Sequence record: LC727695.1
Length of the DNA stretch: 64,000 bases
Strand: one strand, 5' to 3'
The position numbers and the translations under genes are program-made. A model generated the notes under the pieces. It made no database searches, was not told the origin of the DNA, and saw only the letters and a program-made list of their open reading frames with translations. The stretch's first letter is position 1, and each line of letters starts with the position of its first letter. Positions 53,847-56,454 of this stretch are shown here, piece after piece.

Positions 53847-54341
53847 ATGTCAAATAAAGCTAAAGAACCAACTCTAACTAAAGAACAGGAAAAGACTCTA
53901 CGTCTATTTGAACGTGCAGTTGGAGCATCAGCTGCCGCAGCTGATCATATTCTTAACCGTGATGGTTGGGATGTTGTCAATGTACTAGCAGGTTCCGTAG
54001 GTAAACGTATTCTACAAACTGAAGTATTCATTAATCCAGTTATCAATAAGATCAATGAAATCATTCCGACGTTATCTGATCCTACTGGATTCCAAAAGAA
54101 CCTACAAACAGTTATTGCTGACCTTAATCGACTAACTAAAATTATCAGTGTCCTATATGCACAACATCAAGGTAAGGCTGGTCCAGCAAATAATGAAGAT
54201 GAACTAAAACTCATCAGTGAACTTGTTACTAAATACACTGGTATTGAAGGTGCTATTGAACGCGGTATTGATGGTGTAATCCTAGCGATGATCGGCACTC
54301 TTCGAGAAGCTGGTTGGGACGAAAAACTAATTCAACAATAA
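53847..54341 (+). CDS. Hypothetical protein (gp78-like)
   Basis: 164 aa with a GGAG RBS. Confidence 0.75.
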   Translation: MSNKAKEPTLTKEQEKTLRLFERAVGASAAAADHILNRDGWDVVNVLAGSVGKRILQTEVFINPVINKINEIIPTLSDPTGFQKNLQTVIADLNRLTKIISVLYAQHQGKAGPANNEDELKLISELVTKYTGIEGAIERGIDGVILAMIGTLREAGWDEKLIQQ

Positions 54342-54352
54342 TGGAGTTTTAA

Positions 54353-55954
54353 ATGGCTACTGCTGACTTCGATAATGAGTACGATGATACTCCAGAAGAG
54401 AATTTACTAGATCAAATTGATGAGATCAATGCGCAACACGATCCTGACTCTAGTATTGAAAATAATGACGAGGTGGAAACTCCACCTTTCGTTCCTGATC
54501 AAAAAGAAATTAAACTACGTATTCCACGTAATGCTAAAACTGGAAATATCCGGGATGCTTCTGAACCGGCTATTAAAGATAGTGCTAGCATTCTTACTTT
54601 ACTACGTGAGAATCCCCAGACTGTTTATAATTTCCTGGATCACAATAAAGAACTATTTAAAGCATTTGCTGATAATAAAGTAGATGACACTAGTGACGGT
54701 GTAAAGTGGACAGCTGCTATTCTGGAAGGCTTAGCTCACTCTATTGTTGAAGATGCACCAATCGGTGCAACTGCCCGAGAAGGTTCTGAATGGTCTAGTG
54801 AAATTCCTTATGGTGAAAAGATCATTCGACCTGGCCGACCTGTATTTAATACCAATGGTCGTAAAATGACCGATGATGAAACTCTAGTTTTCCTAACACG
54901 TAAAGCTAACATCGGTACGCCATATGATACTTTCCTACCTCATTCAGGTATTTGGGTAAAACTACGTGCACCTACTGGTACTGAAGTAGCTGCCCTACAA
55001 GCACGTCTAGCACAATTAAAGATCCGGCTAGGCGCTGAATCAAAAGGTATGCTGTTCTCAAACATGGCAGCTGTGTTACTTAACATGGTTAGTAGTTTAG
55101 CACTTGCATGTGTTATTCAATCCAACTATAAGTTCAACACCCCAACTGATCTAGAGCATGTTATCTCAGTAGCTGATGAGCCGTTCTTGCATCACGCACT
55201 AGCGGCGACTATGTATCCAGATGGATTTAATTATAGTTATCCATGCATTGCAGATGCCAATACATGTAACCATATTGAAACAGCGAAACTTAATATGTCA
55301 ACGCTTGTTCAATATGATCTACTGGCATTCTCAGAAGAACAAAAGAAATATATTGCACGTAAGTTTAATGCATGTACTGAATCTGATCTTAAGACTTATA
55401 AAGAAGGATTCCGTATTGAAACTCAAGTAACTGAAATGTTTGGTGACGTTGGTGTTGTTCTTGAGATGTGTACAATTGCTGATCGCCGAGAGTCTGGTGA
55501 TAGTTGGATTAACTCAATTATCGATATGACTCAAGGTAGTTTTAATGAACCAGTCGATGGTCCGCAACGTTCTCAGTATATTGCACGTTTACAAAAGATC
55601 TCTATTGCCCGTCAGTTCTCACATTTTGTTAAAGAAATTAAAGTACGTGAAGATGACGATGGTGAAAGTTCTGAAGACAATATTCGTACTGCAACCACTA
55701 ATCGTGAAACTATTGAAAAGTTCTTAACTAATATTCTATCCACACCGGAATATAATGACCGCTTTATTAATGCGGTGAGTAACTTCATTGATTCACAACT
55801 AATTGGAATGATTGCAATTACAAGTTGGAATTGTCCAGTATGTGAGTCACCTGCTGCTACTAAATTTAAAGAACGTTTCCCACACTTAATCCCTATTGAC
55901 ATGCTGTCAACTTTTTTTACTTTGGCGGCCTCGAAGTCAAACCGGATGGTGTAG
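54353..55954 (+). CDS. Putative tail/baseplate assembly chaperone (gp77-like) with a C-terminal CPxC motif
   Basis: 533 aa with YPC...C and WNCPVCESP motifs, reminiscent of T4 gp26-type hub chaperones. It ends over a T7 slippery run. Confidence 0.6.
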   Translation: MATADFDNEYDDTPEENLLDQIDEINAQHDPDSSIENNDEVETPPFVPDQKEIKLRIPRNAKTGNIRDASEPAIKDSASILTLLRENPQTVYNFLDHNKELFKAFADNKVDDTSDGVKWTAAILEGLAHSIVEDAPIGATAREGSEWSSEIPYGEKIIRPGRPVFNTNGRKMTDDETLVFLTRKANIGTPYDTFLPHSGIWVKLRAPTGTEVAALQARLAQLKIRLGAESKGMLFSNMAAVLLNMVSSLALACVIQSNYKFNTPTDLEHVISVADEPFLHHALAATMYPDGFNYSYPCIADANTCNHIETAKLNMSTLVQYDLLAFSEEQKKYIARKFNACTESDLKTYKEGFRIETQVTEMFGDVGVVLEMCTIADRRESGDSWINSIIDMTQGSFNEPVDGPQRSQYIARLQKISIARQFSHFVKEIKVREDDDGESSEDNIRTATTNRETIEKFLTNILSTPEYNDRFINAVSNFIDSQLIGMIAITSWNCPVCESPAATKFKERFPHLIPIDMLSTFFTLAASKSNRMV

Positions 55955-55986
55955 TTAATGATCTGAGATATAGTCGTCTTGAGGCC
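55912..55986 (+). promoter_or_regulatory. Candidate -1 programmed ribosomal frameshift signal
   Basis: T TTT TTT at 55912-55918 in the X XXY YYZ register of the gp77-like frame. GGCCTCGA (55927-55934) can pair with TTGAGGCC (55979-55986), starting 8 nt downstream. Confidence 0.6.
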
Positions 55987-56415
55987 ACTTTCAAGGAAGA
56001 TAGTGGTCACATCCTACATCCAAACTTTGGTTATGATAAGTTAACTGAAGATGATACACACTTAGATAGACTATTATCGACAGTAGGGGCAGTAAGACCG
56101 TCTACAGCAGCACGTTTAACAAGAGAAGCATATCTACTTGATTACGATATCGGTTCACCAGAAAACGGACCCATGTGGTTAAATAAGGTAAATCCTAAAG
56201 AGGACTTTATCGAAGGTGGGTTGAGAAGGAGACTGACTAGAGATTTCTTCAAGTATAAAGTAGGTAGCTTATCTAATATGTCATTAACTGAATTCTTTGA
56301 ATTAGCTTATTCTGAGGTAGAATACATAATTGAATTATGTAGAAATATTACCCATAATGAAGCTGTTAATAACAATAACCAGTTAAATGAATTAAACAAG
56401 CCGTTAACTAAATAA
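55912..56415 (+). CDS. -1 frame ORF continuing the gp77-like gene (includes the 80 aa ORF 56173..56415)
   Basis: The frame is open from 55901 to the TAA at 56415 with no ATG before 56173. Its C-terminus (SLTEFFELAYSEVEYIIEL) resembles tail-chaperone T / T4 gp51-like peptides. Confidence 0.65.
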   Translation, partial: FFYFGGLEVKPDGVVNDLRYSRLEATFKEDSGHILHPNFGYDKLTEDDTHLDRLLSTVGAVRPSTAARLTREAYLLDYDIGSPENGPMWLNKVNPKEDFIEGGLRRRLTRDFFKYKVGSLSNMSLTEFFELAYSEVEYIIELCRNITHNEAVNNNNQLNELNKPLTK

Positions 56416-56432: not shown

Positions 56433-56454
56433 CCCCTCTCCATGTGGAGAGGGG
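56433..56454. terminator. Bidirectional terminator, near-copy of 1037-1088
   Basis: CCCCTCTCCA-tg-TGGAGAGGGG. Confidence 0.85.

Follow-up and report, generated by a model that had tools for sequence, protein, structure and literature searches.

Several genes of bacteria and phages make two proteins by a -1 shift of the reading frame. In the dnaX gene of Escherichia coli (tau and gamma), and in the orfA/orfAB transposase genes of insertion sequence (IS) elements, two proteins are produced in a fixed ratio from one gene by a -1 shift on a homopolymer-like heptamer. In the capsid gene 10 of phage T7 (products 10A and 10B), the shift takes place a few codons before the 0-frame stop, and gives a minor, C-terminally extended form beside the major one. 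In lambda-like and other long-tailed phages, the tail assembly chaperones G and GT share an N-terminal body, and the longer product arises by a -1 shift late in the first open reading frame (ORF). Here we describe a similar arrangement in gp77, one of the 68 core genes of the family of nucleus-forming phages. The gene and its downstream frame occupy positions 54353-56415 (2,063 nucleotides, nt) of the 64,000-nt stretch of record LC727695.1 that was analysed (the window); this segment matches Pseudomonas phage KTN4 at 100% identity, and 47 phiKZ-type records at 95-100%. From the comparison of relatives, a programmed -1 ribosomal frameshift operating throughout the family, which would yield gp77 and a longer form of ~687 amino acids (aa), is in our judgement the probable explanation.

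Compared to these systems, the gp77 locus has points in common with each. As in G/GT, the two products would have the same N-terminal body, and the longer would result from a -1 shift shortly before the first ORF ends; the downstream frame lacks a start, is kept across highly diverged relatives and exists in no fused version, a likeness that on the gp77 side is seen at the sequence level. As in gene 10 of phage T7, the shift would occur a few codons 5' of the 0-frame stop and give a minor extended form, but gene 10 encodes a capsid protein with a much shorter extension, whereas gp77 is a non-virion core gene and its extension a domain of 165 residues. The dnaX and IS-element sites have well-defined stimulators, unlike gp77, in which no conserved one was found; moreover the shifted product is the shorter one for dnaX, and would be the longer one for gp77. 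The layout is as follows, with positions counted along the window.

54353-55954, plus strand: 0-frame ORF of 533 aa, equivalent to phiKZ gp77 (PHIKZ077, KTN4_103); family phrog_4585, expectation value (E) 7e-196; GGAG before its ATG
55912-55918, plus strand: run of seven T in the phase T TTT TTT, over the conserved codons of Phe521-Phe522; candidate slippery site
55900-56415, plus strand: open stretch of the -1 frame, 171 sense codons and the stop TAA 56413-56415
55918-56412, plus strand: -1 frame 3' of the run, 165 codons; proposed C-terminal extension of the long product
55955-56172, plus strand: start-less zone, where the -1 frame runs past the 0-frame stop up to its first ATG, GTG or TTG; annotated as coding in no record
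56173-56415, plus strand: PHIKZ076.4 (KTN4_102), 80 aa as annotated in databases; on our reading the C-terminal end of the -1 frame

At the run, the 0 frame reads ACT TTT TTT ACT, and 11 sense codons follow the second TTT before the stop, TAG 55952-55954. This places a heptamer of the form X XXY YYZ, as found at -1 frameshift sites, in phase with the 0 frame near the end of the 533-aa ORF, as the initial annotation of the stretch had noticed. The same annotation described a -1 frame open for about 170 codons up to 56415, which is correct (171 codons, from 55900), although the TGA that closes it upstream is at 55897-55899, one base away from the position it gave (55898-55900). The first ATG, GTG or TTG in this frame is the ATG at 56173, so that 85 codons past the run lack a start, again in agreement with the earlier count. 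No Shine-Dalgarno-like motif was found in the 15 nt upstream of this ATG, while GGAG does precede the ATGs of both gp78 and gp77.

The arrangement was then searched for in relatives. With gp77 as a query, tblastn matched 226 GenBank phage records, and the layout was present in every relative inspected. With the 165-residue -1 piece, it retrieved 21 distant phages of Pseudomonas, with identities of 32-41%; for most, similarity begins at residue 1 of the piece, that is at the run, where it overlaps the end of the upstream gene and precedes the start annotated for the downstream one. The junctions of PhiPA3, PA1C, Psa21 and 201phi2-1 have a T-run at the aligned Phe-Phe codons and a downstream -1 ORF, as do those of Xanthomonas, Ralstonia, Serratia, Erwinia and Bacillus phages. 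Five relatives checked apart had the same layout: SPN3US, Halocynthia phage JM-2012, Vibrio phage BONAISHI, Aeromonas phage LAh10, and L093, the nearest outgroup to phiKZ. The look at orthologues suggested at the outset (phiPA3, 201phi2-1, SPN3US and others) therefore returned a run of five to eight T and an open -1 frame in every relative.

For counts, a set of 84 junction rows was assembled, corresponding to 76 distinct sequences of 22-100% protein identity (18 clusters at 40% identity, 39 at 50%). A scan of IMG/VR contributed 76 loci, and the Phe522 column was mapped to the DNA by means of a profile alignment. A T-run was present at the homologous Phe-Phe codons in 84/84 rows, with five T in 6 rows, six in 25, seven in 37 and eight in 16. 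The 0 frame stops 8-44 codons past the run, and in all rows the -1 ORF is open across the run and extends 150-191 codons beyond it. The first possible start in the -1 frame is scattered from 8 to 455 nt past the site, without any conserved start position. The +1 frame, taken as a control, was open all the way from the site past the end of the 0 frame in 30 of the 76 distinct relatives, versus 76/76 for the -1 frame. What is conserved is therefore a -1 ORF that overlaps the site, stays open across it and has no conserved start of its own, as expected downstream of a -1 frameshift site. We conclude that the run and the -1 layout are ancestral to the whole gp77 family of giant phages, and that gp77 contains a deeply conserved recoding site which is annotated in no database record.

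The length of the overlap differs among groups. In Serratia phage PCH45 (L009, 2239-2380) and in a Klebsiella/Serratia-phage group (L071, L073, L075, L079), the 0 frame continues for 37-44 codons past the T-run, which leaves ~110-150 nt open in two frames, a dual-coding overlap much longer than that of phiKZ.

Protein databases were also examined. A phmmer search of 1.84 billion representative proteins with the -1 piece yielded 39 relatives, all 45-175 aa long, whose called starts scatter over the alignment, some of them within conserved segments. Relatives of gp77 itself are 485-633 aa long. No in-frame fusion of the gp77 body with the -1 piece was found in the relatives or among the 1.84 billion proteins, and a second, profile-based search for homologues gave no further relatives.

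These data bear on the simplest objection, namely that the run is a homopolymer miscall in what is really one in-frame gene, or that the gene is decaying into a pseudogene. Homopolymers are indeed error-prone in some sequencing chemistries. However, the 111-nt junction has an identical length in 47/47 phiKZ-type GenBank records, obtained by many laboratories on many platforms, and the runs of five to eight T in the 76 distinct relatives all preserve the same -1 relation, with no in-frame version among the proteins searched. Sequencing error was rejected on the basis of these equal junction lengths and of this constant relation. Decay is contradicted by the purifying selection acting on both parts, and by the detection of peptides from both (see below). 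Artefact and pseudogene taken together are hardly credible, and we read the seven-T run as the recoding signal of an intact gene rather than as a break.

Selection was examined at the level of nucleotides. The first codon of the site is TTT in 75/76 distinct loci. Among the 22 loci with a G+C content of at least 50%, TTT occupies this position 22 times out of 22, as compared to 54/342 (16%) for the other Phe codons of the same genes; we conclude from this difference that the run is kept against codon bias. In the same 22 loci, the codon preceding the site ends in T in 19 cases. Conservation of the site thus extends, at synonymous positions, beyond what the protein requires. In 56 of the 76 relatives the in-phase heptamer is a canonical one, T TTT TTT (36) or T TTT TTC (20), and in 17 the TTT TTY is preceded by G or A; one further relative has T TTT TTA, one codon off in the alignment.

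Selection was next measured on the protein encoded by the -1 frame. Earlier estimates of pN/pS (nonsynonymous over synonymous differences) had used saturated and poorly aligned pairs and were uninformative, so that 16 close pairs were used instead, the start-less zone being bounded by the 0-frame stop on one side and by the earliest start codon of either sequence of the pair on the other. This zone gave a pS of 0.56 and a pN of 0.13. Because the resulting ratio, 0.23, is close to the 0.28 found for the rest of the -1 ORF, we conclude that the start-less zone is under purifying selection like the remainder of the frame. Columns common to at least 60% of the 76 sequences are found at residues 31, 32, 37 and 38 of the piece, the median first start being at residue 44.5.

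A different view of the locus is that it holds two separate genes, the downstream frame having its own initiation, from a non-canonical codon or through re-initiation past the end of gp77, and the T-run being a mere consequence of the two Phe residues. Such a view would suit 201phi2-1, where gp135 is annotated from a TTG that overlaps the gp136 stop, and those relatives in which an early ATG exists, for example 8 or 23 nt past the site. Yet start positions are not conserved over their range of 8-455 nt, and a downstream start does not require the -1 frame to be open back to the run, as it is in every distinct relative (+1 frame: 30/76). In phiKZ, neither the 85 codons without ATG, GTG or TTG nor the lack of a Shine-Dalgarno motif at 56173 fits a second gene. 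Finally, Phe-Phe by itself explains neither the choice of TTT against codon bias nor the preceding T. Two independent genes are for these reasons improbable.

In the frameshift model, most ribosomes would read through the T-run in the 0 frame and stop 11 codons further on, giving the 533-aa protein. A fraction would slip back by one base on the U-run, with the Phe transfer RNAs (tRNAs) re-pairing on T TTT TTT. These slipped ribosomes would then read 165 more codons in the -1 frame, to produce a predicted protein of ~687 aa in which a flexible linker connects the gp77 body to a helical domain. PHIKZ076.4 would then be the tail of the -1 frame and not an independent gene. We infer that the shift takes place on the ribosome, and its efficiency and the roles of both products are likewise matters of interpretation. 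By analogy with phage genes that are established to have two products, the purpose is likely to be a fixed ratio of the core protein and its extended form. The essence of the initial proposal, a -1 shift at the T-run joining gp77 to a start-less frame so that a short and a long product are made, is strongly supported by the comparative evidence. A literature search, with subscription journals outside its scope, found no reported frameshift in gp77.

Stimulatory elements, which are usual but not obligatory at -1 frameshift sites, were looked for on both sides of the run. The initial annotation had put forward the following stem as a stimulator.

55927-55986, plus strand: stem with arms 55927-55934 and 55979-55986 and a 44-nt loop, beginning 8 nt past the run

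The stem does occur in the phiKZ lineage, where it is part of the minimum-energy fold, with a z-score of -0.83 that is not unusual for the composition, but it is not conserved beyond. RNAalifold predicted no consensus pair for 15 Pseudomonas-group relatives, in which 52.5% of cells could pair at the stem, versus 50% in a slid control, and the stem was absent from L093. Over the whole family, the 75 nt past the run have a mean fold z-score of -0.53, with shuffled sequences as a control. An upstream Shine-Dalgarno-like motif was present in 3/76 relatives, for 7.7 expected, and is therefore not enriched. A search of Rfam found nothing relevant. Separately, some lineages (L040, L041, L044, L046, L054 and L057, L063, L064) have strong local hairpins of 8-11 pairs, starting 9-11 nt past the T-run, with for example a z-score of -3.4 in L046. 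It may be that stimulators exist but differ from one lineage to another.

Slippage could also take place one step earlier. A polymerase, of the phage or of the host, may stutter on the T-run, so that in some messenger RNAs an altered run places the two parts in a single frame; this would lead to the same pair of proteins. This transcriptional slippage is in line with a signal that is a pure homopolymer, of seven or eight T in 53/84 rows, with the lack of a conserved RNA structure or Shine-Dalgarno stimulator at the site, and with the fact that, according to their annotation, these phages use unusual multisubunit polymerases of their own. However, 31/84 rows have only five or six T, which is short for efficient slippage by bacterial polymerases, and the shortened runs lose a 5' T or gain a 3' C in such a way that the U UUY core needed for tRNA re-pairing is retained. 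The selection of a codon-phased heptamer, including the third-base T that precedes it in GC-rich loci, points in the same direction, although it fits both models. We infer that the -1 shift most likely takes place on the ribosome; slippage of the polymerase is its main rival, and a rather unlikely one.

Proteomic data exist for phiKZ. In a gradient analysis, peptides of PHIKZ076.4 were detected with a peak in fractions 4-7, like polymerase complexes and gp79, while the 164-aa gp78 peaks in fractions 2-3, and gp77 was found in fractions 3-5 and in the pellet (PMC10914614). The summed log10 abundance is 10.7 for gp77 and 9.08 for PHIKZ076.4, which makes the latter ~40-fold less abundant (PMC10914614). 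PHIKZ076.4 peptides and gp79 sediment in nearly the same way, in fractions 4-6, close to the phage RNA polymerase complexes (PMC10914614, supplementary table 1). The phiKZ virion atlas mentions neither gp77 nor gp78.

Several points weigh against a ribosomal frameshift. The first position of the heptamer is G or A in 17/76 relatives, and 6/84 rows have only five T, so that re-pairing in the ribosomal P site would be imperfect in these cases. A conserved downstream hairpin and an upstream Shine-Dalgarno-like stimulator were looked for, and neither was found. The loci share ancestry, which means that the counts given here overstate the number of independent observations. The gradient profile is compatible with a minor long form, and equally with a small protein that is part of a complex. 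The ~687-aa trans-frame product is a prediction, and the evidence gathered here fits ribosomal and polymerase slippage alike.

If the frameshift is real, each genome of the family and of its wider relatives is mis-annotated at gp77, with a small downstream gene that has been given an arbitrary start. Two proteins would come from gp77 in a set ratio, and the longer of them would have an extra helical domain, which would offer a handle on a core gene. These phages have no annotated recoding event, and the gp77 shift would give them a deeply conserved one. It would also be a naturally occurring example of ribosomes shifting on a plain U-run with no conserved stimulator, inside cells in which the phage remodels both ribosomes and transcription.

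We then asked what gp77 may do. It is Chimalliviridae core gene cg18, entered as 'hypothetical protein' (supplement of PMC10299810). Searches of Pfam, NCBIfam and PDB sequences gave no match, and PHROGs returned only families of unknown function. The CPxC motif pointed out in the initial annotation is present, as CPVC at residues 494-497, and four Cys are near-invariant across the family (C298, C305, C494 and C497), which suggests a structural zinc site to which two pairs, far apart in the sequence, contribute. The AlphaFold model of gp77 has a predicted local distance difference test score (pLDDT) of 78 and a predicted template modelling score (pTM) of 0.80, and matched no fold in the PDB. 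Compared by Foldseek to the predicted models of BFVD, it matched its own family and then entries named 'baseplate hub assembly protein, T4-like', at E 1.5e-4 to 2.5e-3; these are weak matches between models predicted on both sides, with a template modelling (TM) score of 0.52-0.59 relative to the target and ~0.3 relative to the query. For the -1 piece, the predicted fold begins with a linker of low confidence, continues as a helical domain that has a long C-terminal helix, and matches only its own family.

In phage T4, gp51 is a hub assembly chaperone, required for assembly and absent from the particle, and gp26 is a hub assembly chaperone as well (PMC3004832). The initial annotation had likened the gp77 ORF to gp26 and gp51. 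The two T4 proteins hit PF12322 at E 9e-64 (gp26) and 4e-52 (gp51), while gp77 and nine relatives gave no hit to this family at E up to 10. An hhalign comparison of the gp77 family with T4 gp51/gp26 aligned 14 columns, at the CxxC knuckle only, with a probability of 22%, and neither single-sequence nor profile comparison gave support beyond CxxC. The likeness thus comes from Foldseek on predicted models, and is not supported by Pfam or by profile-profile comparison. What the two sides share is the CxxC knuckle, and the fact that gp51 is absent from the particle while gp77 is unmentioned in the virion atlas; they differ in that gp77 is twice as long and lacks PF12322, and in that no frameshift is annotated in T4 genes 51 and 26. 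Gene 26 of T4 offers another two-product arrangement: its record (L088, 7803-8429) shows a second, internal product, 26', within this hub gene, which belongs to the same Pfam family as gp51.

The initial annotation had further placed the locus among the G/GT tail chaperones. Membership in this class does not hold, as there is no adjacent tape-measure gene, no match in sequence or fold to a chaperone family, and a difference in size class, the first ORF having 533 aa instead of ~100-150 aa. A tape-measure gene was found neither in the 14 kb around the KTN4 locus nor near the locus in annotated relatives; the neighbours of gp77 are gp78, gp79, a helicase and polymerase subunits. We take an assembly-factor role for gp77 as a lead. 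That its short and long forms correspond, in giant phages, to the tail assembly chaperones made by frameshifting, and that gp77 is a distant relative of T4 gp51/gp26, is doubtful. If this were so, fixed-ratio, frameshift-encoded assembly factors would extend to hub assembly in giant phages with contractile tails, and a function could be assigned to a core gene of the nucleus-forming phages.

The surroundings of the gene contain two further features.

53847-54341, plus strand: gp78 homologue, 164 aa, first gene of the operon; phrog_14050; GGAG 9 nt 5' of the ATG
56433-56454, either strand: GC-rich hairpin with T-rich tails on both strands, just past the stop of the -1 ORF

A gp78-like small gene lies directly 5' of the gp77 homologue in every annotated relative inspected, and often touches or overlaps its start, so that the three reading frames apparently behave as one conserved unit. 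On the opposite strand near the locus are the genes for gp79, a virion polymerase subunit, a helicase and non-virion polymerase subunits. A terminator scan detected no terminator-like site between 55954 and 56415, and the hairpin at 56433-56454 is likely to be the end of the gp78-gp77 transcription unit. It sits between this unit and the converging minus-strand genes, and resembles a two-way terminator.

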